A stretch of DNA of 64,000 bases from Octopus bimaculoides. Taxonomy: Eukaryota. The notes below the pieces were generated by a model, which was not told where the DNA came from, ran no database searches, and saw nothing but the letters and a program-made list of their open reading frames with translations. A program made the position numbers and the translations under genes. The stretch spans positions 43,471,089 through 43,535,088 of the forward strand of contig NC_068983.1 of assembly GCF_001194135.2 (NCBI RefSeq), in the 5' to 3' direction. This document shows positions 15,867-58,239 of this stretch, piece after piece (position 1 is the stretch's first letter; every line of letters starts with the position of its first letter).

Positions 15867-16399
15867 AACCAACATTGATTGTCAAGCAGTGTGCGCGAGA
15901 GAGGTACACAAGCACAAGGACACACACACACACACACACACTCACAGAAATGTATATATACATAATGGGCTTCCATAAAGTTTCGTTCTACCAAATTCAC
16001 TTACAAGGCATTGATCGACCAGGAGCTATAGAACATACTTGTCCAAGGTGTCTTGCAGTGGGATTGAACCGAAACCCACCTGGCTAAAGAACGAACTTCT
16101 TAATCACACAGTCATGTCTACGCCTTGTCTTTGAAGTAACAATCCTGTTTCAGCCCTCTTACATTTCCTAAGCGAAGCATAATATTCAACGAAATCCGGC
16201 AATTAAAATACTACAATATGTCTGTAAATAATACTTTCAACTTGTAAATTTATAAGTAAGGGAACGAATTTTGCTCGGGGAATGCAAACCCAGGTCCGAT
16301 GAAGTTTTTCAGGAGAATGTTCAAAGCGTTTTTATTGACCCATGAAAATTTTTGTGGGTGCTCTTGTAACCCTTGCATCTCTTGTTCCCGATCCTATGT

Positions 16400-17800: not shown

Positions 17801-20457
17801 GGAGTTAAAACCTCTTTATCATTCCAGTAAGTATCAGAGACAACTGGAGGTACGCTTCGGTCTTATTAGCTGTCATCAGTGAATCATAGACTTCACTGTA
17901 CTGTAGAGACGAGAGAATCACTGAGTGTAGTATACTGGCAGGTGTGAAATGATGCCATATTTAGATAATTAATTTCTGTGGCTAATTACTCTCTGACGTC
18001 ACTTACATAAACACTACAACAATTAACTTCAGTAATTAACCATAGTAATTCATTCGCTAAAATATGTTGTTTCGATCCCAGTGACGACGAATGCGATGAC
18101 GTCACTATGACGACGAATACGATGAAGTCACTGCTTCGCTGAGGAGACCTAACAAAACGAAAACATGTCCAGAATTGTTTCCCATGTTCCCATGGTCATT
18201 GAGCAAACGTTGTCTTTTCTACACCACATAATTTTTCCTAAATAGAAATAATTATAAATTAAGTGTCATTGTGTTTCATCGTTACATTCTGAGTTCAAGT
18301 TCCCCCTATTCCAGTTAAAGCCCATAAAAGTGGACTCTGGTACACTCTGCTCCTCACCCATCTCCATAAATGATATGACCCAGTGTCTATATAAGATTTT
18401 ATTATTGCTAATTGTTTGGTCTTACTGTCGAAAGAAAGCTAACTCCAATGGTTTGCACCACTTAAATGTGTGGACTGGGAGAGACTCTATATCCGTTCCA
18501 CCTGCAAGAAATAACAGCTAAATTTCCCTTCAATCACATCTTAATGTCTTAAGGAGAGTACGCGCACGTTCTACGATGTGTTCCTAGATACACCGTGAGC
18601 TGAAAAGAGATGCCCACGAATGGAACCTTATATATATATATTACATACATACATATATATATGTGAGTGCATGTGTATATGCATATGTGTATATATATAT
18701 ATATATATNNNNNNNNNNNNNNNNNNNNNNNNNNNNNNNNNNNNNNNNNNNNNNNNNNNNNNNNNNNNNNNNNNNNNNNNNNNNNNNNNNNNNNNNNNNN
18801 NNNNNNNNNNNNNNNNNNNNNNNNNNNNNNNNNNNNNNNNNNNNNNNNNNNNNNNNNNNNNNNNNNNNNNNNNNNNNNNNNNNNNNNNNNNNNNNNNNNN
18901 NNNNNNNNNNNNNNNNNNNNNNNNNNNNNNNNNNNNNNNNNNNNNNNNNNNNNNNNNNNNNNNNNNNNNNNNNNNNNNNNNNNNNNNNNNNNNNNNNNNN
19001 NNNNNNNNNNNNNNNNNNNNNNNNNNNNNNNNNNNNNNNNNNNNNNNNNNNNNNNNNNNNNNNNNNNNNNNNNNNNNNNNNNNNNNNNNNNNNNNNNNNN
19101 NNNNNNNNNNNNNNNNNNNNNNNNNNNNNNNNNNNNNNNNNNNNNNNNNNNNNNNNNNNNNNNNNNNNNNNNNNNNNNNNNNNNNNNNNNNNNNNNNNNN
19201 NNNNNNNNNNNNNNNNNNNNNNNNNNNNNNNNNNNNNNNNNNNNNNNNNNNNNNNNNNNNNNNNNNNNNNNNNNNNNNNNNNNNNNNNNNNNNNNNNNNN
19301 NNNNNNNNNNNNNNNNNNNNNNNNNNNNNNNNNNNNNNNNNNNNNNNNNNNNNNNNNNNNNNTATATATATTCATATATGTATGTGTGCATGCATACACA
19401 TATATTTATACAAGCACCCTCCACACACGTATATGTAAGTAAACACTATCTACACGATAATTAATACTGTCCATTCTTTCTCATTACCTGTCAACTACCG
19501 TGTTAATATTAAAGAACCTTCACTCGTCTTGTAAAAAAAAAAACTGAAAAGCATTATTATTATTTATTTATCATAATTTCCCATCACCACCATTCTCATT
19601 TTCCTGTAACGAATAGAATATTTAATTTTTTGTTGAAACTATTTGGTAATTATAACTAAAACAACTATACACACAGCACTTAACCTTGTATCTTTCTCTC
19701 TCTTCTTCCCTGCCTGTTTCTACTCGCACTCACTTTCTCCTTTCCTCTTTCTATCTTTCTCGTGTTCTCTCTTCCCCCTCTCTCTGCCTGTCTCTGTTTT
19801 TTTCCCTCCCTCTCCTGCTTAGCTGCTTCTTTCACCAAGTAGTAATGTTTTTGTGTTTCGTGTGGCAGTAAAACTTCCAACTCACTTAGCTCTGGTTTCT
19901 GTAAGTACTTTCACCGCTTTTATTTATATATAAATAGATAGATATAGATATAATATATGTGATTGCGATTTCGTTGTTTCATTTAAGTTTTGCTTAACCT
20001 GTTATAATACTTTAAATCTTGTCAGGTAATTTATAACAACACTCCCCTAGTTTATGTATGTATTCATTTGATAAATTCATTTCTTGCAATAAATATTACT
20101 ATTAGTAGTAGTAGTATTAAAACCAACTTATTCTAACACTTTGTGTAAAATCTTACAATCTCTAACAATCTTGGTATTTAAAACAACATAATCGATCTTT
20201 TATGTAAAAAAAAAAGACAAACTAATTTCAACGAGGTACATACATCTGCCAATATATAGGTTAAAAGTACAATATTTATGCATTCGACATATATAAATGT
20301 TTCACTACACATTGTTCTTTGTTATTTAATTTGATTTTAATCAACTGAAATCTTAAAAACAACGGCTGATAGGGAACGTTTAATTTATATTTTATAAGAA
20401 ACCTGAACTTTAACTAGACTTCAAACGTTACCTGTGCCAATATATTTATATATATAA

Positions 20458-20502
<45 letters not shown>

Positions 20503-23500
20503 GTGTGTGTGTGTGTGTGTGTGTATAGTAAATATATTATGTGTATGTATGTATATGCAATTTGTTTACATCTTGAGAATTTAGAAAGTTCAGGAGATAT
20601 AAAATACATCGTTTTGATCGAACTCGAAGTAAATAAAGCTATAAATAACTGTGTGGAACATTGGATTGAGAAACCTCTTAGATGAGAAAAAAAAAAGTCT
20701 TCGACTCTCGATTCCTCCATTCTTCTTTTTCTTCATTCTAGTCATCTCTTCCACGTAATCATTTATTTCGTCACTTTTTAAACGACAGCCAAATGTTTTA
20801 AGCAATTATATATAAATACATATAGACACACACTGCTCACACCCACACACGAAAACGGCGACCAGTTCCTTAATATTACACCTTTCTAATACATCAGTCA
20901 TATCCATTCTTGATTTTATCTCTTCGCCACGATCTCTCTCCCACTATCTATCACACAGACACAGAAATATGTATGTATACACACTCATTATATATATATA
21001 GATAATACATACATACACACATATAGATACGCACACGTCCGTTTTAGTTGTAGTTCTTATATTTTTATTATGGTAATTGAAAGCAAATCCTCTTCATTTA
21101 GAATATATATTTTTCATTCTCTCTCTGTCTGTCATTAATAATGATAATAATCTACAGTTATACATGCGCGTGTTTGTATGTATGTTATATATATATAGTG
21201 TGTGCGTGCGCGCGTATGAAGTAGTACATCGCTAATATAATGCACACACCAGACACATGTCCATTTCGCCTCCACACATGACAAATGCTGTCGTTTCCAT
21301 GTTTTTTTTTCTTTTTTGGAAAAGCACGAACACACATACACTCTCTCTCCTATATATATATATATATGTATATGTATGTGTATAAAGTGGCACACCGCTG
21401 TATTTAAATACACTCCAACACATGTTTATTCCGCCTCCTCCCTTCCACCATATATGTATATATTTGATTACGTAAATTTTAATTCTTTAAAGACTAATTT
21501 AACTTTTGTATATGAACCAAAAGCGAAAAGAAAAAGAAAGAAAGCTTAATTCCTCTAATTAAACACAATTAGTTCTATCTATCTATCTAGCTACAAATAG
21601 ATAGATAGATTTGTCGTTTGTCTTTTCTTCTCAGTCACACGAAAACAATTGGTATGGAAATGTAATTGACAACGGATTTTGTATTTACTTCATTCTGCCT
21701 TTTCATTGCTTTCAATTTTCCCATCGTATGCGGCTAATAAATCTCTTTTCTGTATAATAGAGTAAAAGATATATAACGGTATGCGTTTACAAAAGCGTCG
21801 AGCAGAGTGAAACCTTTTTGATTTGTAAGCTTTTGTAGGTGGTTAAAAATTGCATTGTAGTGAGTAAAAGCATTATTTAATTTTTTTTAGCATACATGTA
21901 GAAACAGTGAAATTATAACATTTAATTGGTTTAATTATACGTTATGAGCGGTTGAAAAACGAAACTTAGCATTCAGTTCCTTTCAGTTGAATATTTTGAC
22001 ATGGCGAAATTACAAAATAAATTTGATACTTTCGTTTTGCTTATTAAAAGCTTCACGAAAACGTCACGTTCGCCGACGCTATTGTATACTCTTAACACAA
22101 CATTAAGAATCTCGTAACATTACGTAGATGTGGAATTAACCAAACAAACAAAATACGTAAATCTTGTTGTTAGTGGTGACATTTGCTTATATAATAAATG
22201 TAGAAACGTGCTTGATATATTTGTAAGATATACAGGAAATATCAACACCGAGACAGATATAAAAGTATAAAAACTTTCTTCAGCCTTTTTAGAATATAAC
22301 TATATGTTATTCTTTTTCCCTTTTTTTTTTTTTTTGACGACCGTATCCCGAAGTGAACCATTTAGATGTCATTAATACGGACGACAATACCTTAGTGTTA
22401 TTATTTTTAACACTCACATCTACCCTGTGTATATTCCAATCATGACTAACCTGTCTTTTGAAAGATATCTCTGACTACACTACCGAATGTGTACTTTCTG
22501 TATTTAAACTCGGTGTGGTGTGATCTAAGTGAAATTTGCCTGCTATTTCTTGCAGGCCGGTTAACCGTAGAGGATCGCTTGGTGGCTCCAACAACGTGGA
22601 ATGCAGCTAAATATTTGAAATTATTCACACTACACCGTCGTTATCATTGTTTATTTAAGAATGTCAAAGCATTATCCTGCTCTGAATTTAACTGAATAGT
22701 TCTGAGAATCGTGATAATATTAATATATTTTTGTATCAGTTTATGGCCTGAATGAAAGAAGTATGTAGCGGTGAGGTAATTGTGCTCTCATTCGCACAAC
22801 TCTGTCCATTGTATGGCTAGGCGAAATGTGAGTGGGTGAGTGAACTGGTCGCTTATTCATCAAAAGGTGTCCTGGTATTTTGTTATTTGTCTTTGTGTTT
22901 CATTTTCGTTGTCCCCATCCATTTCCTCTCTCTCCCTGTGTGTGTGTGTATAAGCATGGCTGTACGGTAAGAAGTTTGCTTCCCAACCACATGATTCTGG
23001 GTTCAGTCCCATTGCAAGTGTCTTCTACAATGGCCTCAGGCCAACCAAAGCCTTGTGTTCAGTCCCATTGCATAGTACCTTGGGCAAGTGTCTTCTACAA
23101 TGGCCTCAGACCAACCAAAGCCTTGTGAGAGGATTTGGTAAATGGAAACTAAAAAAAAAAAAAAACCTATTGTATATACAGGGCCGGCTCAAGGTACAGG
23201 CAACTCAGGCAGTCGCCTGGGGTGCCATGTTCTGGGGGGTGACAAAGACAAGGAAATTTCCACAACCGTAGGCTTGTACACGCTGAAGTTCAGCTTGCCC
23301 GGGGCGCCAACAACGCTAGGGTCGGCCCTGCGTACATATGTATGTACGTGCATCTTTGTGTCTGTATGACAACCGGTGTTGGTGTGTTTAATCTCCATGA
23401 CATAATGGTTCAACAAAAGAGACCGATAGAATAAGTACCAGGTTTGAAGAAAAATACTGGGGTCAATTCATTAGACTGAAATTCTTCAGAGGTGGTGCCC

Positions 23501-28316: not shown

Positions 28317-28625
28317 ATGAAAGGTGCTAAGGGCCAACGCAAGTTAGTGAAAGCTAACATTGCAGACGGTTCTACCATCATTGTTAAACATCCACAACCA
28401 AAACACAGTAACCAAATAAATTCCAAATCTAAAAAGGAGCCAAATAATCTGAGAACCTCCACTGCTTTTAACAACCCTCAACCAGAACAGGGTATGGATT
28501 TGTCTGTGGTGCCAAATAATTCCCATCCGTCCTCATCTTCCAGTAGTTCTATTGTCTATACAAAAGCTAAGAGATACTCAACAGAGCCTCTGTCAGACTC
28601 ACTAAATTCCAGTGGACAATTACAG
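28317..28625 (+). CDS. BLZF1: BLZF1/golgin-45 first coding exon (MKGAKGQRK...SGQLQ)
   Basis: Exon starts at 28244 after a long T-tract and cAG. In-frame TAA at 28296, ATG at 28317, donor CAG|GTAAG in phase 0 joining the next exon. The N-terminal sequence is divergent, so assignment rests on splicing continuity. Confidence 0.75.
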
Positions 28626-31600: not shown

Positions 31601-31723
31601 CAGGGTGGGGTGGAGGGTATGTGGCAAAACATAAAAAGGTGAGGTGGGGTGGTGTACAGAAAACAGTATAAGAAAACCAAAGTCTTCATAGTAAAGTTTA
31701 TTCCTTTCTCTTCTATTTTCCAG

Positions 31724-31987
31724 AGAGTTTTAAAACCTGTGAATGTGGTCGATCCATTGATGGCAACCAGTGTTGATATGACAGTTAGTACTAATAATTT
31801 GGATGGAGGCAACCATTCTAATACCAGTGCTGGAGAAACTTTGAGTGGTTCTGTGATACCATCTTCCATTTCCCACCTTGATTTAATCAATGGACCAAAA
31901 TGTTGGAGAGATTCTTGTAATGATGAAAAGAAATATTTCCAACGAGAGATTGATTCATTAAGATCCCAGCTAGATGTTCAAGTACAG
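31724..31987 (+). CDS. BLZF1: BLZF1 coding exon 2 (RVLKPVNVV...FQREIDSLRSQLDVQVQ)
   Basis: 264 nt, ttctattttccAG / GTaaga, phase 0/0. The end aligns with human QDKEGLSNQLRVQTE. Confidence 0.88.
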
Positions 31988-33189
31988 GTAAGAAAGAATT
32001 TCATTTGCTAATCAGTACTTAAATTCTCTGTAATTAAATTGATATATTTGATGTATGTAAGCACAGGTGTGATTGTGTGGTTAAGAAATTTACTTCCCAT
32101 GCACATGGTTCTTGGTTCATTCTCACTGCATGACATCTTTGACAAGTGTCTTCTGTAAATCTTGGCCGACCAAAGCCTTGTGAGTAAATTTGGTAGACAG
32201 AAACTGAGTGAGAGAAGGTGACGAGCTGGCAGAAACATTAGCACGCTGGGCGAAATGCTTAGTGGTATTTTCACCTGTCGCTACGTTCTGAGTTCAAATT
32301 CCACCGAGGTCGACTTTGCCTTTCATCCTTTCGGGGGCGATAAATTAAGTACCAGTTACACACTGGGGTCGATGTAATCCTTTTGTCTGTCCTTGTTTGT
32401 CCCCTCTATGTTTAGCCCCTTGTGGGCAGGAAAGAAATAAGAAACTGAGTGAGAGAAACCAGTCATAAGTGTGTGTTTTCAGTATCATCATCATTTAATG
32501 TCTGTTTTCCATGCTGGCATGAGTTGGATGGTTTGCCAGGAGCTGACCAGACTCCAGTTGTCTGTTGTGGCATGGTTTTTACAGCTGGATGCCTTTCCTA
32601 ATGCCAACCACTTTACAAAGTGTGCTGCTTGCTTATGTATACTTATGTATATATGTGTGTTTGTGTCTCTTTGTCTCGACACTGTGTGGTTGTTATAAAT
32701 GAGTCACACAGTGTCATTAATTTCTAGTAATCTGTGGAAACATGTCTGGTCATGGGGAAATATTCCATTCCACCTTTGCTCTCAAGCATATTGGGCAGCA
32801 AGTTGATACCACTGGTTTCTCTTGACTGCAGTTATGAATGTTCTGCATTACATAGCTTTCAGTTTTCTTCTGGACACCAATGGTGTCTGTTTGAAATTCA
32901 TAACTGTTGGCAACAGTAAAAAAATCTGCTTCAATAAACAGCCTAACCCCAGTGGAAAAGTGGATGTTAAAACAATGAGGATGATGATGATGATGAGGAG
33001 GAGGATGGCAGCAGTGATGATGATCCTAGTTCTTAATTGCAATCAGTATATTGACACAAACTTAACTAGTGCTGGTGATGGTACCATGTAAAAAGCACCA
33101 ATTTCACTCTGTAAAGTGGTTGATGTTGGGAAGGGCATCCAGTTGTAAAAACCATGTGGAAACCGACTATGGAACCTGGTATAGCCCCT

Positions 33190-33440: not shown

Positions 33441-33968
33441 TTCCTGTCTAACCATCCAACCCACACTAGCATGGAAGTAGACATTAAGTTTTGAGACCAT
33501 GGCTGCCAAAGTCAATAAAGCACCATCTTGCTGCTAGCTGACTTCTTGCAGTTGTACTTAATCCATCTAACAGATAATCCATGGTGTGTGTTACTTAACT
33601 AACCATAATTAAATCACTTCCCAATCACATGGTTTTAAGTTCAGTCCTCACTCCTACATCTTGGGCAAGTGTCTTTTACTGTAGCCGCTAGCTGACCAAA
33701 GCCTTGTGTGTGAATTTGGTCGATGGAAACTAAATGAAGCCCATCAGTATATGTCATCATCATCGTTTTAACATCCACTTTTCCATGCTTGCATGGGTCA
33801 GACGATTGTTGTTCAGGAAGCATGCAATTTTTGAAGAATGCATTGTCATGACAGCTAACAACTGATGTGGTTAGTTTATTCTATCTTGCATGACCGCTTT
33901 TCCAGATATTTTTAATTAAACTTACAACATTGCACAGTTGTATTTCATTTCTATAATTTTATTGTCAG

Positions 33969-34045
33969 GTGAATAGTGAATTAAAGAAATTGCTGGTTGC
34001 CTCCCTTGGTGAAGATTTACAATATCGAGTGGAGAAGCTGCTGAG
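33969..34045 (+). CDS. BLZF1: BLZF1 coding exon 3 (VNSELKKLLVASLGEDLQYRVEKLLR)
   Basis: 77 nt, AG / GTaggt, phase 0/2. Close to human VNRELKKLLVASVGDDLQYHFERLAR. Confidence 0.95.
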
Positions 34046-34175
34046 GTAGGTTTTTTTCTTTCTTCATTTTATTTACTTTTAATGCTGATCGATATTTTGA
34101 GTCATCTGTCTGTATAGTAGAACTCTATTCAAATTTGTCATCCTAATAAATATACAGATTCCTATTTAAAGCCCA

Positions 34176-34740: not shown

Positions 34741-35990
34741 TCCCTTTCTCTCTTTCGGAGAGGCACAAGCACATACACAGACATATACACACATGGCAGT
34801 AACTTCCGCCTACCAAATTCAATCACAAAGCTTCGGTCAGCCTGGGGCTATAGCAGAAGACACTTGCCCAAGGTGCCACACGGTGGGACTGAACCCGAAA
34901 CCATGTAGCTGGGAAGCAAGCTTCCATTATTATTATTTATTATTATTATACACACACACACATATGCAAATGAGTAGAATGAGATCTGGATTCAGAGAGC
35001 TCAGAGCACCTTTTGTGGCCTTGGCTATCAAGTCCACATACTAATCAAGTACAAATTAATATAATGTTAACCTATGGAAGTCAGGTGGAGAAGACTCATT
35101 AAGCCAGATGAAGCCGTAGTTACTTTCCTGACTTTTGTGCATAATTCTGTGTACTGTACATGCACCTTTGATGAGTTGTAGTGCTCCTGAGCACTATACA
35201 CAGTTATTTTGTTATTATTATACTCTTATAAATAGATGACCCCCTTGTACAAAATAAACAACCTCTACTATGAATAGCTAAAATCATCATTTAACATCCA
35301 CGTTCCATGCTGGCATAGGTTGGACGGTTTGACAGGATGTGATGGGTCCAAGGGACTGTATTGTGCTCCAGTCTCCTCGTTGGCATGGTTTCCACCCTTC
35401 CCAATGTCGACCACTTTACAGTGTCTTATCTGGGTTGTTTCATTGGACCATTGGTACCATTGAGGTCACCATGCAGCTTACAAGCCTACAAAACACAAGG
35501 CCCGATGGACTCAATGCTATCAGTTGACAGTTAAGGAGAAAGGGTGGGACACAACAGGTTCTTGTTATAGGTGAGTTACATGGCTGCTTACATTTAGAAG
35601 AGAGAGTGAGGAAGGAATCATTAGTAGCTGCAAAGCGATAAATATTGGTGATGAAGTGTCCAGGTGGCACTTCAAAGTATGAGCTAATATTCGTCAGCCA
35701 TTAACAAGAATTGAAAGTCAACTTTATCATTTACAAAGATAAAATATCTTCATTTGACTTGATGGTCTTAGTAGTTTTTAAAGAAAAATTCTTTTTGAGA
35801 AGGTACTCTGAGATGAAAGGCAAAGCTGATCTCGGTGGAATTTGAACTCAGAATGTAGAGACAGGCGAAATACGTCTAAGCATTTTATCCAGTGCCCTAA
35901 CAATTTTGTCAGTTCGCTGTTGCCTTAATGATGATAATAATAAAGGATAAATTTATCCAATTATATTTGTTTGTCTTCATGTTTTTACAG

Positions 35991-36113
35991 GGATAAAGCT
36001 CAATTATCTTTGGAAGTCGGTGGTTATACAAAGAAAGTTTCAGAAGATTATGAAAACCTTGACCGATTGTCCATTCAAGCTGACATTTGGAGAAGCAAAT
36101 TTATGGCCAGCAG
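35991..36113 (+). CDS. BLZF1: BLZF1 coding exon 4 (DKAQLSLEV...LDRLSIQADIWRSKFMASR)
   Basis: 123 nt, gtttttacAG / GTaaat, phase 2/2. Matches human EKNQLILE...LERMSIQCDVWRSKFLASR. Confidence 0.95.
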
Positions 36114-36144
36114 GTAAATTACTTCCACAATAAATTCTTATTAA

Positions 36145-36596
36145 CCCTTTCGATACCAACCCAGCTGAAACCGTCTTGTTTCCATAAATTTTGAATTAAA
36201 ATCTTCCACCAAACCATAGTCACAATTTATGTTCCTAACATTAGCTTAATGATAACCAAGTTATTTTACTAAATTTTTTGTTATATTTAAAATTAATTGA
36301 AAGAAACACAGAGCATCTCAAAATAGATATGGTAACAAAAGGGTTAAAATATATAATAGCAAAACCAATTCTTAACCCTTTTGATACTAACTCGGCTGAA
36401 ACCACCTCTGGCTCTGTAGTACAAATGACTTGTTTTCAAAAGTTCTGAATTAAAATCTTCTACCAAACCTTATCCACAATATATGTTCCTCACACTAGCT
36501 TAATGATGACTAAGTTATTTTACTAAATTCTTTGTTATATCTAACGTAATTGAAAGAAACACAGACCATCTCAAAATAAATGCAGTAATGAAAGGG
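36145..36596. mobile_element. Two tandem piggyBac-type MITEs (36145-36343 and 36376-36596)
   Basis: Each runs TTAA|CCCTTT...AAAGGG|TTAA, is ~200-220 bp and AT-rich, with no ORF. Confidence 0.85.
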
Positions 36597-36836
36597 TTAA
36601 AATTTTGAAAATATAAATGTAACATTTAAAAGTATTTACTTGGCTGATTAGTATAATGAGTGTGGATGGGAGGAGTATAGGATTCATAATACTTAATCTT
36701 TGGCAGCTATTGGCAGTGATATCACATGTTTGGTAGCTATTAGTGATGTTAGTTGACAATTTTCTGTTAACAGTTCATCCAACAAGAAAAAAAAATGAAA
36801 GAGCTGGAATATGAAAATTCTTACTTTTATTATATA

Positions 36837-37382
36837 CGAGGTCTGTTCAAAAAGTATTAGGACTGGTGCTAAAAAAAAAAAAAAAAAAGAGATCTACAAC
36901 ACATCAATCCAGCATTTAATCTCCTTCGAATTAGTCCCTTTCTAAAGCCGCACACTATATCCAGTGTTGTTTCCATGGATGGAAGCATTCGTGGAACTTC
37001 TCTTTTGGGATAGCAGGCTTCTGCCTCATTTCATTCTCTTGGATTTCCTCAAAATCTTGAAATCTTGTTGGAGTCTTCCACTGCAAAGACCCACACTTTG
37101 TCACTAGCCATAGACCCATGCTTTCTCTTCTGTTGTGGCTGTTTTCAAAATGTCTTTCTTTCTCGGCACAATCCAGAAGATCCTGTGCAGCTGCAACTTG
37201 ATCTACACTTGACAAACTTTACTTCCAAGCACTACTATAAACAGTGAAAGTGAGCAAGAATGTTACAGCTTAGTGTGCATGTGAGACAGAGTTCAAGGCG
37301 TACCTGTACCAAGCAGCTTCATTCAGTGTACTTTAGCTCTGTTACCATAGCAACAATCCTGATATTTTTTAATCAGATCTTG
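36837..37382 (-). mobile_element. Internally deleted Tc1/mariner element with transposase C-terminal remnant
   Basis: Imperfect ~29-bp TIRs (CGAGGTCTGTTCAAAAAGTATTAGGACT / reverse complement CAAGATCTGATTAAAAAATATCAGGATT), with TA on both sides. Minus-strand RFQDFEEIQENEMRQKPAIPKEKFHECFHPWKQHW resembles the mariner C-terminal helix region. Confidence 0.85.
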
Positions 37383-37807
37383 TATTTATATACATATATA
37401 TGTATGTGAATGTTTTTTTCTCACTTCACATTAAATCTGTTGAGCTAACAAAGCTAGTTTATTGACATGCTCTGCCAACAAAATCGTTATCTAGTTCTGT
37501 GCTTTTGAAGGTATTTGGATTTTTTTAAAAATCTAATCTCTTGCTTGAAAAACAGGTAAATGTGAGCAACAAGAAGGGTATATTTCCAGTTAAATAAACA
37601 GAATAAAAAATTATACTCAGTTTAGTGTGATTTTTCTGAACTGAACACATATCACATAAAAAATTGTTTCTTGTTGATTATTCAGTAACTACATCACAAT
37701 CACTATAAAACCACATTACTCTAGCGTTCCACTTCTAAACACCATATTATTGTACTGTTTTGAAATATAGATGCCATATAAAATACTTTTGTATTTTCTC
37801 CTATTAG

Positions 37808-37936
37808 AGTTCTAATTGATGAACTGGCCAAAGGAAGAGGATTGTTATCTTCCCAATATCAAGAATCTCAAGATGCCATTCAAAGGTTGTTAAACGAACG
37901 ACATGAATTACAGTCTCACCTCATGGAATCTTACAA
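37808..37936 (+). CDS. BLZF1: BLZF1 coding exon 5 (VLIDELAKGRGLLSSQYQESQDAIQRLLNERHELQSHLMESYK)
   Basis: 129 nt, ttttctcctattAG / GTaagt, phase 2/2. Matches human VMADELTNSR...AIQDLLSEREQFRQEMIATQK. Confidence 0.93.
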
Positions 37937-38646
37937 GTAAGTCAAAAAAACATTTATTAATTTTATCTAAGGCCTCAGCCAGTCCACTTAGGCGAACCTT
38001 CCTTCATTGGACACGAAACTCAGTTTGCAAAGACTTATTGGGGCAAGCGAAAGCGAAATCGGGATGGCACCTGTGCCCAGCGTCCCCTTTCTGGCACTTG
38101 TGCCCACAGCATGTGTAAGGACTTTCGAGAGAGATCGTTGCCAGTGCCCCTGGACTGGCTCTTGTGTGGGTGGCACATAAAATACACCATTTTGAGCGTG
38201 GCCATTGCCAGTACTGCCTGACTGGTCTTCGTGCCGGTGGCGCATAAAAAGCACCCACTACACTCTCTGAGTGGCTGGTGTTAGGAAGAGCATCCAGCTG
38301 TAGAAACTCTGCCAAATCAGATTGGAGCCTGGTGTCGCCTCCTGGTTTGCCAGTCTTCAGTCAAATCGTCCAACCCATGCTAGCATGGAAAGCGGACGTT
38401 AAATGATGATGTTTTAAACTGGAAAAGTCAAATGGCTACATGGATTAAGTTGTTAGACTGGTATTATATTAGTCAAGGGTTCAAATTACTTGCAAATATT
38501 TCATTGTGCTTTTAAACTAAATTTTGATTAAAGTGTTAAATTTGTGATTTAGGTAGAACTAGAGAAAGCTAAATCATAGATAATCCTTTTGTAACCAACT
38601 TGTCAGAGATTACTTTTGATTTTCGGGTACAAGCTTCTTATTTTAA

Positions 38647-39276
38647 CCCTTTAGCATTCTGATTATTCTACCAAATCTAATACTTATTTATTCGCAGATA
38701 CAGAAGTAATTTATTCTCAAACGCATGATAATGCTAATACAATAGCATGAACAGAATAAACTATCCATATATTGCAGAAAAATTTGTTAGTAGCCATGAG
38801 AATAAATTATTTCCATATCTTTCAATACATCTCAATGCTTCTAAAGCAAACTTTGTTTGTTTACTTTCATCGTAAGTTGAATTTATTTATTCAGGCCGTT
38901 GCCAGTACTGCCTGACTGGCCTTCGTGCTGGTGGCACGTAAAAGCACCCACTACACTCTCGGAGTGGTTGGCATTAGGAAGGGCATCCAGCTGTAGAAAC
39001 TCTGCCAAATCAGATTGGAGCCTGGTGTAGCCATCTGGTTCACCAGTCCTCAGTCAAATCATCCAACTCATGCTAGCATGGAAAGCGGATGTTAAACGAT
39101 GATGATGATTTCAAATTAATCATGCATTATCTCATAGCTTTGAGATTTTGATGATATAATTGTTTATTTTTAGAATGATGTTATAGGGTTGGTGTGAGAG
39201 TCTGTATCTGGATGGTTTGAGCATAAAAACAGGTAGAATATTTGGGCCAGATATGGCCAGTTTAAATGCTAGAGGG
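38647..39276. mobile_element. Second TTAA MITE family (CCCTTTAGCATT...AAATGCTAGAGGG) with nested insertions
   Basis: TTAA on both sides. A shorter copy lies at ~1497-1716. This copy carries ~410 bp extra, including a SINE fragment at ~38893-39110. Confidence 0.7.
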
Positions 39277-39998
39277 TTAAAGTCATATAGATTCAAATGG
39301 CACTTTGAAATTTCATGTTAAAGTTTATTGCAAAATTCAGCTCAATAATGAGAAATTATTTCACTAAATCTTTCCTTGTTTTCAAAATTAAATGAAATAT
39401 AGAGTGTGTATTTCAATAGAAATATATATTAACAAAAGGATTCAAGATCACAGCCATAGCCTATACCAGTGTCACATAACCAGCCCGTTTAAAAAGTACC
39501 TTTGAATTGTCAGGCGACATGCCGTGCTTGAGGAGACCTATTGAGTCAAGTAAAATCAAAATCAAAAATCAAATCATAATCAAATGGGAATGGTGGTTGT
39601 GGCCATGCCAGTGCCACCTGACTGGCTCCCGTGCTGGTGGCATGCAATAAGCACCATTCATGCGTGGGTTGTTGCCAGTGCTGCTTGACTGGCTCCCATG
39701 CCAGTGGCACGTAAAAAGCACCCACTACACTTTTGTAGTGGTTGGCGTTAAGCAGGGCATCCAGCTGTAGAAACCTTGCCAGATCAGATTGGAGCTGGGT
39801 GCAGGCTACTGGTTTGCCAGTCCTCAGACAAGCCATCCAACCAATGCCAGTGTGGAAAACGGACGTTAAATGATGATGATGATGATTCATAGGGTTAGAA
39901 TATTCAACCCAAGCAAGCATGAAAATGTAGTTTTCAAAATGATGATGAGGAGGAGGAGGACGTACAGTTCTTTTATCTTTAATTCTTGAATATTTCAG

Positions 39999-40236
39999 AT
40001 TTTTGAAGCAAGTCAATGAGGCATTTGATCCACTGAATTCTCAGAATCTCTTCTCATTACCAAACACTTCCAACATTTTAGAATTAGTTAAACTCATACA
40101 ACAGCTCTCTGAAGCCATCCGTTTTCGTCTTCTGCCCGGGAGGGTCTCTTTACCAAGTTCTACATCACCCCTTCAGTCCGGAAGCAATTTTGCTGCTCAG
40201 AATGCATTAACTCCAGCCGAAGCTCAAGCACAAGAG
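39999..40236 (+). CDS. BLZF1: BLZF1 coding exon 6 (FLKQVNEAFDPLNS...NALTPAEAQAQE)
   Basis: 238 nt, tatttcAG / GTgagc, phase 2/0. The TPAE motif matches human STPAEKMAET. Confidence 0.88.
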
Positions 40237-40452
40237 GTGAGCAGTCTTTCTATTTATTACCTTTCATTTCTACAGATAATATTTCCTTTTTATTGCTATT
40301 GTTATTATTTAATATCTCTGTTCTGCTTGGCTCAGGTAGACCCAAGGTGGGTGTCAGTTGAACACTTCACAAAGACTCAAAGGTCTCCATGTGATTATTG
40401 ATGTTGTTTAGTCTTAGATTAATCCTGATTGAACAAACCTAGGTCTACTAGT

Positions 40453-41315
40453 TTACTTGTAAGATTCCATGAGGTGAGACTGTAATTCATGCTGCTTGTT
40501 TAACAACCTTTGAATGGCATCTTGAGATTCTTGATATTGGGAAGATTACAATCCTTTTCCTTTGGCTAGTTCATCAGTTAGAACTCTAATAGGAGAAAAT
40601 ACATAAAAACATTATCGTCATCATTATTTAGCCCTTTTGATACCAACTCGGCTGAAACCGGCTCTGGTTCTGTAATACAAATGCCTTGTTTTCATAAGTT
40701 TTGAATTAAAATCTTCCACCAAACCTTAGTCACAATTTATGTTCCTAACACTAGCTAAATGATAACTAAGTTATTTTACTAAATTCTTTGTTATATTTAA
40801 AATTAATTGAAAGAAACTCAGAGCATCTCAAAATAAATACAGTAACGAAAGGATTAATATCCATTTTCCATGCTGGCATGGGTTGGATGGTTTGACTGAG
40901 GACTGGCAAGCCAGTAGGCTGCACCCAGCACCAATCTGATCTGGCAAGGTTTCTACAGCTGGATGCCCTTCCTAACACCAACCGTTCTGAGAATGTAGTG
41001 GGTACTTTATACATGCCACAGGCATTGGAGCCAGTCAGACAGCACTGGCATTGACCAGATTCAAATGGTGCTTTTAATGTGCCACTGGCATGAGAGCCAG
41101 TCATGGGTACTGGTATCAACTATGTTCAGATGGTGCTTTTTACATGCTACTGGCACAGGGAGCCAGTCAGGCAGCACTGCAGAGTATTTTATGCAGTATC
41201 TAGATTTCAAAACAGTACAATAACATGGTGTTTAGAAGTGGAACACTAGAGTAATGTGGTTTTATAGTGATTGTGATGTAGTTACTGAATAATCGACAAT
41301 GAACTATTTTTATGT
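40453..41315 (-). pseudogene. Inverted, interrupted duplicate of BLZF1 exon 5 plus its upstream intron (source 37654-37940)
   Basis: 40457-40585 is the reverse complement of exon 37808-37936 with 8 mismatches, including a new TAA. Splice flanks are copied through ~40603. Homology resumes at ~41183-41315 against intron 37654-37790 after a MITE and SINE insertion. Confidence 0.92.
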
Positions 41316-42441
41316 CTGATTTGGGAACACTCTGTACTTTATACATGCCACCATCACCAGCTGGGTCACCAAGTAACGTGCAAGATGAAGACCTCTTAGT
41401 CAGCAGGGGGAATGGAACCACAGGAAGTGGCTTTGTGCCAGGTAAGAGATTAGGATATAATAGAGGGATAGAGATGGGAACAAAAGGATTAAAAAGAGAA
41501 AAGTATGTTAATAGAATTTGAATGAAGTTGAAGAACACAAAGCTTCCTGAAGTTGATTTCATAAGGTTTTTTTGAGAATGAAAATATGTTGTAGAGAGAA
41601 ATAGTTATTGAAATGAAATGAACATGAACAGCAACAAATAGAGACTGAATACTGGAGATGAAGAGAAGATCAGGAAGAGTGGGTGGGTGAGTTCATAAGA
41701 GTGAGAGGATAGTGGCAGGTAATTTAGAGAGAGATGGACACAGAAGTGAATATGATGAATGATGTACAAGGGTGAAGATGTGGTCAATGGTAAATATCGG
41801 TAAAAGGGAGAAGTCAAAAGAGGTAGCTCAGGAAGGAGGAGGTGGTAAGTGGAAGTACAAGAAGGATGGAGAATAGTTGTATCATAAACTTGTACATATA
41901 AGTGCAAGAGTGGCTGTGTGGTAAGTAGCTTGCTTACCAACCACATGGTTCTGCGTTCAGTCCCACTGCGTGGTACCTTGGGCAAGTGTCTTCTACTATA
42001 GCCTCGGACCGACAAAAGCCTAACACGAGCTTAATGATAACTAAGATATTTTCCTAAATTCTTTGTTATATTTAAAGTAACTGAAAGAAACACAGAGCAT
42101 TTCAAAATAATTACTGTAACGAAAGGTTAAGCAAGAGAACAGCATATGCAAAGGTTTTCAGTTTTTATCAATTGTCTTGAGCCTCGAGTTCAGTGCCTTG
42201 AGATAAACAGCATGTTTGGTACAGCATCACACTTCTCTGTTGCTTGTACAGTACGATTCCAATCACAAGTTCCTTTCTGGCTGTTGAACTTATTTCCATT
42301 TATTGTAATGTAGGTGCAGGAGTGGCTATTTGGTTAAAAAGTTCATTTTGCAACCATGATTTGAAGTGCAGTCTCAATGCATGACTGGTGTTTTCTACTT
42401 TAGCCATAGGAAGCCTATTGTGTGTGTGTGTGTATATATGT

Positions 42442-42475
<34 letters not shown>

Positions 42476-45049
42476 ATATATATATATACATATATATACA
42501 CACACACACACACACATATCCTTTTATTTGTCTTAGTCATTTGATTGTGGCCATGCTGGAGCACCGCCTTTAGTCAAACACATCGACCCCAAGACTTATT
42601 CTTTGTGAGCCTAATACTTCTTCTATCAGTCTCTTTTGCCGAACCGCTAAGTTACGGGGACACAAACACACCAGCATCAGTTGTCAAGCGATGGTGGGGA
42701 CGCAAACCCAGAAACACATATTTATGTCCCCTGTAACTTAGCAGTTCAGCATAAGACCAATAGAATAAGTACTAGGCTTACAAAAGAATAAGTACTGGGG
42801 TCGATTTGCTCAACTAAAGGCGGTGCTCCAGCATGGCCGCAGTCAAACGACTGAAACATATAAGAGAATAACTTATAGACACACACGCACACACACACTA
42901 TTGGGTTCTTTCAGTTTCTGTCTACTAAATCCACTCACGTGGCTTTGATTGGCTGGGGACCAAAGATTCCACATAGTAGAACTGAACCAATGACCATTTG
43001 GTTTGAAAGCAAACTTAACCACACAGCCACTCCTGCAAGTGTTTGGTTAAAAAATTCCCCCTACAACTTATGTAATTGTAGGTTCAGTCCCATTGCATGA
43101 TACCTTGGTTACTTCACTGTTTAAATGCTACCTTAGTTACAGTACATCCTTTGCAGTCTCAAACCAAAGGCGGAACCACTATGCAGTCGCTCAAACAGTT
43201 AGAAATAGCAGTCAAATAACTCTGAAAATACACCTTGAAAGGACAAATTAAATAATGTATAGTCTGAGATACTCCTAAAAAAAATAGCTAAGATGGTCAA
43301 AGCTAGAACGTCTTTTGTTATAGGGCTGCTCAATCAGTTCTGACCTAGGGCTAAACAACAATCTGTATTGTCTTTTGATTTAATTTTTTAATTAAGAATG
43401 TTATTCAGAACCTAATTCATTCTCTAATATCTGAAAATTTATCATGCTGTCTTTAAATGTTTGTTAATATTTCGTCATCATCATCATCATCATTAGTAAT
43501 CGTCATCAACGGTTTAAGATTTTTCCCTACATTTAATGTGTTTGGTGAATGTGGAGGAGCAGGGGGTATGGGGGATTATCCAATGTTAATTAAAATTGCA
43601 TCTGCGTTGAAGAAAGAAAATTTCATTAGCTACACAATCAAGACTAGTCATAAAGACACGGGAGACAACTCTGAAATTTTATTCATTCCAGAGTTACTTC
43701 CCTTGCCTTAGAATTAATCATTAAACTAATGTCTTTTCTATCCTCCCTAAGATTCAAATTTAAATTTCATTACTGACTACATTAACTAAATTAGAACTCA
43801 TTTTATTACCAAGTATTTTCCATGCAGAAGGTATCCATGGGTATTCCACCGCCCCCAGTCATTTCTCCGTTTGTTTATGTTTTTTTTTAACATCTACTTT
43901 TCTATGCTAGCATGGGTTAGATATGGCATTGTGGCATTGTTCGCTGCTGGACGCCCTTCCTATCGCTAACCCATACCTGTTTCTCATGTAAAGGGTTTCT
44001 TATTCCACACATCTTCAAAAGTGCAAAGCCAGGAAGTGGTTCGTTGACAGGGGAAATGACAACATCACCACCACCACTTGTAGCTCAGCAATTTCAATGA
44101 AATGTGAATGTAAACCAGTGTTGCTCAACCGTTATTTTACCCATGAACCCCTCCGATTCCTATTCTACTCAGGGGTACCCCCATAGCCATCCGATGTTTA
44201 GAAAACCCTATTATATTTTTAGTATTAAATATTATTGGGAAATGAATAAAGAAAATTAAAATGTTATAACCAATTTATTTTGCATAAATTTTAACAACAA
44301 AATCTTATAATGGACTCTCAAGGGTCTTGTAGACTCCAGTTGAGAACCCCTGATGTAAACAGTCAAACAATAGGCACATACACACATACATATATACATG
44401 CATGTATGATGTACATACATATATATATATATATATATATACATATGTACACATGCTCACACACGTATACGATGGGGTTCTTCCAATTTCCCCCTGACAA
44501 ATTCACTCACAAGGCTTCAAATGCTCTGGGGCTGTAGTAGAAGACATTTGACTGAGCCTCTGTGAAGTAGGACTGAGCCAAAAACCATGTGATTGGGAAG
44601 TGGATGTTTTAACTATACAGTCCTGAATTGGTAACTGGTCAATATCTTCTTTTAATCTTTTTATCTTTTTACTCATTTCAGTCACTTTGACAGTGACCAT
44701 GTTGAGACACTGCCTTGTTTAAATTTTAGTCAAATGAATCGACCCCTGTACTTATTTTTTCTTTAAGCCTGCTATTTATACTACAGGGATGTAAACTCGC
44801 TAACACTGGTTATCAAGTGGTGGTGGGGGATAAACCCACTCACACACATATATATGACAGGTTTCTTTCAGTTTCCATCTACCAAATCCACTCAAGGCTT
44901 TGATTGGCCTCAGGCTATAGTAGAAGACACTTGCTCAAGGTGCTATACATTGCGACTGAACCTGTAACCATGTGGTTGGGAAGCAAGCTTCTTACCACAC
45001 AGCCACACTGCGCCTATATGTACATACATACATACATATATATATATAT

Positions 45050-57345: not shown

Positions 57346-58239
57346 ATGGGCTTTTTTCAGTTTCTGTCTACCAAATTCACTCACAAGGCTTTGGTTCTTT
57401 GGTTGGCCCAAAGCTATAATAAAACACACTTGCCCAAGGTGCCATGCGAGAAAACTGAACCCAGAACCATGTGGTTGGGAAGCAAGCTTCTTACCACACA
57501 GCCGCTCCTGTGTCTATAGATGTTTCTGAATTTCTTTCTGATGAGGAAGAGTGTTTTGATGGCAAAAGTGATGAAGATCTTCAAGACTCCATTCAAAATA
57601 TTTACAGCAACATGGACAGATAATACAATAGCCATATATATTTCTGATATTGAAAATACATAATTGTAAATCATTCTTATTTTTACACTTACTGACCAAA
57701 TCTTTAAATTTCAAGTCTGTGCTTGAATTAAGAAAGTTGCAAACAAATAATGCCCTCTTGACCTTGGTTTAATTCGTAATATTGTGAATAAATAGGTTCT
57801 AACTTTTGACAGAGTAATTTCAGTGCCAAAATCTAAGTGATATATTTTTGCTTTTCCTAATTCATACTTGTGTGTCTAATGATGATGATGATAAAAATAA
57901 TAATGATAATAATAGTAATAATAATAATAATAATACTGTGGTGTTTAGTGAGTCCCTAATTTGTCCTATCCTTGACAGGCAGCTAAACATGATGTAATTG
58001 TTGGGACATACCAACATTGAACCAATGGTGAGTGAGACACGGAATATATTTTGTATTCTGCTTCATTTGTCTTCAGAAAACAAACAAATCTAAATACAGA
58101 CTCAAAGACTGCTTGCAGCATTATTCACGTCTCATTTCTTTCTTGAGTTTTATTCTTTGTTTTATACAGCTGTGTTATTTTCAATGTTTTCTTCGAAAAA
58201 AGATTTCATTTTCTTTTTCACTGGTTCTACATGTTTATG

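Follow-up and report, generated by a model that had tools for sequence, protein, structure and literature searches.

Golgin-45 exon 5 of Octopus bimaculoides has an inverted copy in a downstream intron that looks like a tolerated, lineage-specific duplication

Within a 64-kb window of the Octopus bimaculoides genome (the whole stretch of DNA analysed, 64,000 nt from one individual's assembly), the gene golgin-45 carries an inverted copy of its own coding exon 5 inside intron 6. Judged from its sequence, the copy looks like a lineage-specific, unconstrained local inverted duplication. It is probably tolerated, and an RNA duplex with its parent exon, if formed, would give rise to editing as a by-product.

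Local alignment placed a 287-bp source, 37654-37940, in reverse complement at 41315-41183 and 40616-40453 (window positions throughout). The source consists of 154 nt of intron 4, exon 5 and 4 nt of intron 5, bearing out an earlier annotation made from the letters alone (the sequence-only reading), which had described exon 5, its splice sites and ~150 bp of upstream intron as inverted in intron 6. A repeat search of 36500-42500 recovered the same arrangement as two inverted pairs, I3 (37778-37940 / 40453-40615, 163 nt, 92% complementary) and I5 (37659-37787 / 41183-41311, 129 nt, 91% complementary). Because a BLAST search of 37600-37999 against the whole window found just the two pieces of the copy (E = 7.7e-65 and 4.3e-49), chance cannot account for the match, nor is the arm a dispersed repeat. 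The elements involved are the following.

37654-37807, plus strand: source arm, intron part; last 154 nt of intron 4, with the 3' splice site and the probable branch-point region.
37808-37936, plus strand: golgin-45 exon 5 (tblastn); 129 nt, encoding ..VLIDELAKGRGLLSSQYQESQDAIQRLLNERHELQSHLMESYK.
37937-37940, plus strand: start of intron 5, GTAA of the 5' splice site; final bases of the duplication, the alignment stopping at 37940 / 40453.
39998-40239, plus strand: golgin-45 exon 6 (tblastn); lies between the two arms, in the loop, and is conserved in a decapod locus (L001).
40453-40616, minus strand: copy piece 1; 4 nt of the 5' splice site, pseudo-exon 5 (40457-40585) and ~30 nt of intron 4; 150/164 identical to 37777-37940.
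40617-41182, no strand assigned: insertion splitting the copy, 566 bp; a repeat like a miniature inverted-repeat transposable element (MITE) and a minus-strand repeat like a short interspersed element (SINE), each found in multiple copies in the window and at the O. sinensis and O. vulgaris loci.
41183-41315, minus strand: copy piece 2, from intron 4 (source 37654-37787); 118 of 129 positions identical, and 4 bases more.

The intron part of the source, 37654-37807, aligned to the reverse complement of 41315-41183 and 40616-40586 and was collinear with its O. sinensis and O. vulgaris orthologues. In the exon part (37808-37936 against 40585-40457), 121 of 129 positions were identical, the same count as in the sequence-only reading, and as RNA pairs the 8 mismatches comprise five G:U or U:G wobbles, one U:U and two A:C. 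Both A:C mismatches sit where that reading had put them, at the third bases of GAA (37898) and CGA (37901). Translated, the copy reads VLTDELAKGKGL*SSQ..., with a stop codon from TTA>TAA. An origin as a retrocopy or from a splicing intermediate was ruled out, because the copy includes intron 4 sequence and reaches 4 nt into intron 5.

A chimeric or fold-back join made during assembly is an extremely improbable source of the copy, even though one assembly of one individual was available and inverted joins are a known class of artefact. An artefactual fold-back would be identical and contiguous, whereas these arms are ~8% divergent with a polarised, copy-specific substitution pattern, and the copy carries a 566-bp nested repeat insertion without counterpart in the source. 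The earlier judgement that misassembly was less likely, which rested on the substitutions and nested insertions, holds.

We compared the orthologous loci of O. sinensis (L009), O. vulgaris (L010) and Argonauta hians (L008) together with a 20-kb stretch from a decapod (L001). Exon 5 was present as a single, forward copy in each of the four, and no inverted copy was found by tblastn or sensitive blastn across the golgin-45 locus of O. sinensis, O. vulgaris and Argonauta hians or in the 20-kb decapod stretch. A check of orthologous introns in other octopods, which the sequence-only reading had proposed, accordingly returned the copy in none of the three. Orthology between O. bimaculoides and O. 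sinensis or O. vulgaris ran through exon 6 to 40430 and came back at 42721; this interval holds 2.29 kb in O. bimaculoides and, in the other two, 0.58-0.96 kb of unrelated transposon-like sequence after a (TA)n run. The segment is absent from the orthologous site in both species, as expected of a derived state in O. bimaculoides. A clean empty site was not seen, the gap being filled by different sequence in each lineage, and on this comparison the spot in intron 6 is an apparent turnover hot spot, remodelled in both lineages.

The (TA)n run of O. sinensis and O. vulgaris begins right after the last orthologous base, 40430 (L009 about 20226-20242; L010 about 20943-20958), and is followed, where O. 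bimaculoides has the copy, by a G+C-richer transposon-like fragment of 0.5-0.9 kb, longer in O. vulgaris (L009 20243-20760; L010 20960-21880). O. bimaculoides has a (TG)n(TA)n microsatellite at 42419-42519, and the block 40431-42418 (~2 kb) may be a single O. bimaculoides-specific insertion beside this hairpin-prone repeat.

Substitutions were polarised on a five-way alignment, with the following counts.

Exon part (129 bp): 7 copy-specific, 1 source-specific, 1 separating source and copy from sinensis/vulgaris.
Intron part (154 bp): about 7 copy-specific substitutions, 3 source-specific, 3 separating source and copy from sinensis/vulgaris.

The copy had changed at 5.4% of its exon-derived part and about 5% of its intron-derived part, and equal rates of ~5% in the two are as expected of unconstrained DNA. 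Two of the copy changes are CpG>CpA. The exon change shared by source and copy is derived in the sinensis/vulgaris lineage, with Argonauta as outgroup evidence. Exon 5 itself carries one O. bimaculoides-specific substitution, the synonymous GAG>GAA at 37898, where O. sinensis, O. vulgaris and the copy all kept G; this A:C mismatch goes back to a G>A mutation in the real exon, the C facing it having stayed as it was. As a single-site curiosity at most, an ancestral G:C pair there became A:C, and editing would restore an I:C pair. Branch lengths over the 154 bp of intron were ~3.5 changes for the source, ~7.5 for the copy and ~6 for sinensis/vulgaris; they would date the duplication near the split of O. 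bimaculoides from O. vulgaris and O. sinensis, and fit a position before or after it.

The sequence-only reading had the copy later split by a MITE and a SINE. The 566-bp repeat insertion is confirmed and, as it is missing from the source arm and from the source-arm orthologues, it was inserted after the duplication; the identities of its two components are less firm. The first, 40624-40860, is a ~237-bp interspersed repeat with at least 7 copies in the O. sinensis locus (89-91% identity, some tandem). By eye, 12 of 16 bases at its ends match as an inverted repeat, and the repeat search flagged no clean terminal inverted repeats (TIRs); a MITE is plausible on these features. The second, 40854-41179, is a SINE-like repeat in minus orientation with many copies in the O. 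sinensis locus, and ARAGORN saw a tRNA-like head in none of the SINE-like repeats. Three copies of this repeat lie in plus orientation in intron 5.

38191-38411, plus strand: SINE-like repeat 1, family D1; forms inverted pair I2 with 40854-41065.
38898-39104, plus strand: SINE-like repeat 2, nested in a MITE at 38642-39281.
39605-39878, plus strand: SINE-like repeat 3, thermodynamically the preferred partner of the minus SINE-like repeat; pair I1, 197 nt, 86% complementary.

The MITE that houses SINE-like repeat 2 has 17-nt TIRs (TTTAACCCTTTAGCATT / AATGCTAGAGGGTTAAA, 94% complementary).

Whether the copy can meet its parent exon in RNA was assessed by thermodynamic prediction, which ignores pseudoknots, bound proteins and transcription kinetics. 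Two-strand folds gave the following differences in free energy (ddG).

Exon arm with copy piece 1: ddG -192.8 kcal/mol, 147 intermolecular bp.
Intron arm with copy piece 2: ddG -143.5 kcal/mol, 125 intermolecular bp.
Three plus/minus SINE-like pairs: ddG -157 to -194 kcal/mol, 140-185 intermolecular bp.

The minus repeat sits between the two copy pieces and its partners between the arms, so the SINE:SINE and exon 5:copy helices cross and are mutually exclusive in a nested fold. In the unspliced RNA (37600-41400) the unconstrained minimum free energy (MFE) structure, at -1369.0 kcal/mol, contained 175 bp of SINE:SINE helix (I1), 125 bp between intron arm and piece 2, and no exon 5:copy pairs. 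Enforcing the exon helix gave -1317.1 kcal/mol, a cost of ~52 kcal/mol, and keeping the minus-strand repeat single-stranded brought back 126 of 129 exon pairs; the 125 bp between intron arm and piece 2 were present in all folds tested. Masking of both exon-5 splice sites, which the sequence-only reading had envisaged, is therefore not the predicted equilibrium state of the unspliced RNA and would need kinetic trapping. Such trapping is possible because piece 1 is transcribed ~240-400 nt ahead of the minus-strand repeat.

Splicing changes this prediction. Removal of intron 5 takes away all of the plus-strand SINE-like repeats, leaving exon 5 free to pair with the copy, and in an RNA of exons 4, 5 and 6 plus the first 1161 nt of intron 6, 126 of the 129 exon-5 nucleotides paired with the copy at a mean in-register pair probability of 0.97. 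A 752-nt minimal construct folded at -309.8 kcal/mol, against -171 +/- 9.6 for shuffled sequences (z = -14.5). With intron 6 at 31.6 kb, the copy would stay tethered to exon 5 long after neighbouring splicing. Thus, of the ~150-bp duplex that the sequence-only reading had proposed for the pre-mRNA, with exon 6 looped out, the pairing stands in the two-strand fold and after removal of introns 4 and 5, and it is absent from the unspliced MFE. Splicing before the copy is made, which that reading had named as a refutation, bears on the masking of splice sites and not on editing, as the length of intron 6 keeps the copy attached. In these models the structural half of the earlier idea is strengthened, because splicing of introns 4 and 5 leaves the opportunity for pairing intact.

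The exon 5:copy duplex, as modelled, is a credible substrate for ADAR. In PMC9989829, hyper-editing substrates are recognised as inverted copies that share 80% identity or more across 50 nt or more and lie within a few kb on one transcript; here the two pairs span 163 nt (92%) and 129 nt (91%), the arms 2.5-3.4 kb apart in one transcription unit. That study searched a 4,001-nt sequence centred on each site (~2 kb each way), and the exon-5/copy pair is slightly wider. In established ADAR biochemistry, near-perfect duplexes of more than 100 bp are edited promiscuously on both strands (PMC9989829). Exon 5 has 46 adenosines, 27 of which would be recoded by editing and 19 silently changed; the exon-derived part of the copy (40457-40585) has 33. 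Both A:C sites are among the silent ones (GAA>GAG and CGA>CGG); 37898 follows a 5' A, whereas 37901 has a disfavoured 5' G. The coiled-coil segment encoded by exon 5 is identical in three Octopus species and near-identical in Argonauta, and heavy recoding of it would more likely do harm than good. No golgin entry stood among the rows listed, through scaffold KQ417510, of Table S5 in PMC9989829, the supplements of PMC8382921 gave no golgin-45 match, and a literature search returned no published mention of golgin-45 in octopus, its sole match being an unrelated paper.

Could the copy instead be a functioning, selected exon-complementary sequence (ECS) for clustered exon-5 recoding, exon 5/6 splice regulation or both? 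The intronic complementarity of an ECS is there (40453-40616, 92% complementary to 37777-37940, in intron 6 of the RefSeq model), the predicted duplex is very stable across the whole exon, and two A:C mismatches provide a context favoured by ADAR. The copy has also been long-lived, with most changes in its exon part keeping wobble pairing; coleoids recode extensively (PMC9068888), and intronic ECSs classically define exonic editing sites (PMC4053846; PMC1920255). Nevertheless, we consider a selected ECS unlikely. The cross-species conservation of an ECS was not found: the copy is missing in O. sinensis, O. vulgaris, Argonauta and the decapod, while the Octopus species all share one exon-5 peptide. 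Its exon and intron parts decay equally in a neutral-like manner, it has a stop codon and a 566-bp disruption, and the inserted repeat sets up a competing helix that, in unspliced RNA, is ahead by ~52 kcal/mol. Editing at either A:C site would be silent, and annotation lists no isoform that skips exon 5. The functional half of the sequence-only reading, recoding or splice control of golgin-45, hence goes unsupported: the copy occurs in one lineage, decays as if neutral, is broken by repeats with a competing helix and has no annotated splicing consequence. That the copy is a new-born ECS giving regulated, useful, species-specific clustered A-to-I recoding of exon 5, possibly with modulation of exon-5/6 splicing, is likewise quite improbable, and the literature search returned no direct precedent for an ECS born by exon duplication.

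The main effect in RNA might fall on exon 6, its flanking inverted matches promoting back-splicing into a circular exon-6 RNA or skipping of the exon. Upstream of exon 6 lie the exon-5 arm and three plus SINE-like repeats, downstream the copy and one minus SINE-like repeat. Inverted SINE-like pairs (I1, I2 and I4; 155-212 nt, 80-86% complementary) bracket the exon, so that the inverted matches in flanking introns associated with circular RNAs (circRNAs) were found here, and the pair 39673-39869 / 40854-41050 accounts for 175 bp of the unconstrained MFE. We still judge such an effect to have a low probability: exon 6 is present in all linear RefSeq isoforms, skipping its 242 nt shifts the reading frame, and whatever effect there was would be owed mostly to the SINE-like repeats and not to the exon copy. 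The arrangement of those repeats around exon 6 (38191-39878 plus, 40854-41179 minus) is the usual layout favouring back-splicing.

Processing of the hairpin to small RNAs against golgin-45 exon 5, in the manner of hairpin RNAs or endogenous siRNAs, seems very improbable. In its favour are the long, near-perfect intramolecular duplex of genic sequence and the documented origin of plant hairpin genes from inverted duplicates of their targets (bioRxiv 10.1101/682591). Against this, no Rfam family matches the region, and ADAR editing would antagonise dicing. We know of no description of an endogenous siRNA pathway acting on such hairpins in cephalopods. The Rfam search itself (36000-43000) gave sub-threshold miRNA-family matches alone, all on the microsatellite at 42413-42527, and these were dismissed as low-complexity artefacts.

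A tolerated local inverted duplication is the probable explanation. At about the time when O. bimaculoides parted from the O. vulgaris/O. sinensis lineage, or shortly afterwards, the 287-bp segment (end of intron 4, exon 5 and 4 nt of intron 5) would have been copied in inverted orientation to a place ~2.5 kb downstream, in intron 6; the likeliest route, we infer, is a replication or repair template switch beside the unstable, microsatellite-rich spot. Afterwards the copy would have gained its stop codon, ~5% divergence and 566 bp of interspersed repeats as unconstrained DNA, being an accidental exon-complementary sequence. Splicing of intron 5 would take the competing plus-strand SINE-like repeats with it; exon 5 and the copy would then share a nascent RNA during transcription of intron 6 and should form a nearly perfect 129-bp duplex with exon 6 in a ~455-nt loop. 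From ADAR biochemistry, promiscuous clustered A-to-I editing would be predicted to follow in vivo, and any such editing would presumably be a tolerated by-product and not a selected recoding or splicing device. Metazoan editing is mostly hyper-editing of double-stranded RNA (dsRNA) from young, lineage-specific inverted repeats, often without selective value (PMC9989829; PMC4053846).

Several points weigh against this account. Heavy editing of a conserved exon in which 27 of 46 adenosines recode should be costly, yet the copy has lasted roughly since the species split, and its long survival could hint at mechanisms of tolerance or at a use. The copy branch, at ~5.1%, is slightly above the ~3% per-lineage divergence from O. 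vulgaris/sinensis, and a duplication predating the split, with subsequent loss in the sinensis/vulgaris lineage, may be compatible with the branch lengths. Five of the 7 copy-specific exon changes keep G:U wobble pairing, which by judgement is somewhat above neutral expectation, the counts being small. No clear microhomology or target-site duplication was visible by eye at the copy junctions. Finally, the copy is known from a single individual's assembly, which bears on its fixation in the species.

The left junction consists of unmatched filler and the right flank (41316-41895) of unique sequence.

40431-40452, no strand assigned: unmatched filler, 22 bp between the last orthologous base (40430) and the copy; allowing up to 3 mismatches, the 22-mer has no second site in the window.

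A transposon of the Pack-MULE or Helitron-like kind was rejected as carrier of the fragment: no TIRs or target-site duplication bracket the copy, and neither flank (40431-40452, 41316-41895) recurs in the window or in the four related loci. The ~580 bp at 41316-41895, right after the copy, are purine-rich and unmatched in the O. sinensis, O. vulgaris and Argonauta loci and in the rest of the window, and they may have come along with the duplication. This region has a 69-aa open reading frame (41312-41521) and an AG/GT-like site at 41441-41444. The exon-like stretch 41312-41443 (MSDLGTLCTLYMPPSPAGSP...) occurs in none of the golgin-45 RefSeq isoforms, does not fit the phase of exon 6 and lacks a counterpart in O. 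sinensis or O. vulgaris. The true exon 7 lies outside the window.

The gene was named golgin-45 because named homologues match it. Its concatenated conserved exons matched XP_014779668.1 (437 aa, O. bimaculoides) and also named golgin-45 proteins of many molluscs; Pfam and PDB sequence searches found no golgin-45 family, returning weak coiled-coil matches alone. The window agreed base-for-base with GCA_001194135.2 chromosome CM046603.1 across the 35,684 bases compared, a window position being the L007 position + 25316. A tblastn search with XP_014779668.1 placed coding exons 1-6 inside the window, the first four as follows.

28317-28625, plus strand: golgin-45 exon 1 (tblastn).
About 31649-31990, plus strand: golgin-45 exon 2 (tblastn).
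33966-34046, plus strand: golgin-45 exon 3 (tblastn).
About 35983-36113, plus strand: golgin-45 exon 4 (tblastn).

Exon 7, the last coding exon (aa 381-437), is at L007 46531-46704, ~7.8 kb past the window end, which makes intron 6 ~31.6 kb long; the inverted copy starts 213 nt inside it. The exon-5 peptide is 91-100% conserved in other cephalopods. RefSeq isoforms X1-X3 of O. bimaculoides and X1-X4 of O. sinensis differ only downstream of exon 6, and none of them skips exon 5 or exon 6; the isoforms are alike in the species that has the copy and the one that lacks it. Joining exon 4 to exon 6 would drop 129 nt in frame. In the golgin-45 protein cluster, 8 of 8 members came from NCBI and no Octopus member from the Logan read-assembly collection. 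Elsewhere in intron 6, 57961-58032 (exon about 57976-58017) is an alternative terminal exon of isoform X2 (...AQAQE + AAKHDVIVGTYQH*), which cuts golgin-45 short ahead of its C-terminal domain. By tblastx it matched the decapod locus L001 at 15883-15954 (LSYP*QAAKHDVIVGTYQH vs LSYYQQASKHDVTHSSYQQ), and this match suggests an alternative 3' end of golgin-45 conserved across coleoids.

Among known systems, classical intronic ECSs such as those of the GRIA2 Q/R and R/G sites (PMC4053846; PMC1920255) likewise provide a coding exon with a downstream intronic partner in the same pre-mRNA, include A:C mismatches and can pair only while the partner intron is unspliced. Unlike the golgin-45 copy, they lie in the adjacent intron, are short, imperfect and conserved across species, and serve few selective sites. 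The golgin-45 copy is a full-length inverted paralogue, 129 bp near-perfect, and stands two introns away from the splice site upstream of its exon; confined to one species and decaying, it predicts promiscuous editing and is known here from DNA sequence. Hyper-editing substrates made of inverted Alu, B1 or SINE pairs (PMC9989829; PMC4053846) are closer in being two young inverted copies within a few kb, lineage-specific and probably neutral. In golgin-45, however, the arms come from local segmental duplication and not from two transposon insertions, and one arm is a conserved coding exon, not a transposon, so editing would hit the protein.

The SLC9A6 exon with an inverted LINE pair, presented as an example of editing-site birth (PMC4053846), also places a coding exon in dsRNA with an inverted, duplicate-like partner, which sits in the neighbouring intron. 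There the exon is repeat-derived, the arrangement is conserved across mammals and editing is verified, whereas golgin-45 has an ancient exon, a recent partner and predicted editing. Matches that drive circRNA formation (PMC8938519) resemble the inverted matches on both sides of exon 6, except that one upstream match in golgin-45 is an exon and the case is a prediction from genomic letters. Hairpin RNA and MIRNA genes from inverted target duplication (bioRxiv 10.1101/682591) share the step from genic inverted duplication to long hairpin; the golgin-45 duplication differs in being intragenic and in pairing with its parent exon in cis. The golgin-45 case is unusual in pairing a conserved, single-copy coding exon with its own inverted paralogue; it involves neither a transposon pair nor a short evolved ECS.

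The origins of ECSs are poorly documented; known ones are mostly old and conserved, and young dsRNA comes mostly from transposon pairs. The golgin-45 locus offers a natural experiment in which the same exon of the same protein has a partner in O. bimaculoides and lacks it in O. vulgaris and O. sinensis, two close relatives whose genomes and transcriptomes are public. It asks whether a long intronic partner is enough for exon editing in a coleoid, how promiscuous such editing is, whether splicing is disturbed and whether the later SINE insertion, with its competing helix, damps editing of exon 5. Should RNA show no effect, this would still say something about the distance, and the delay within transcription, across which partners can act. 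A copy that is simply tolerated would count as an ordinary structural variant; if regulated, useful recoding proved true, local inverted duplication would be a coleoid route to new editing sites.

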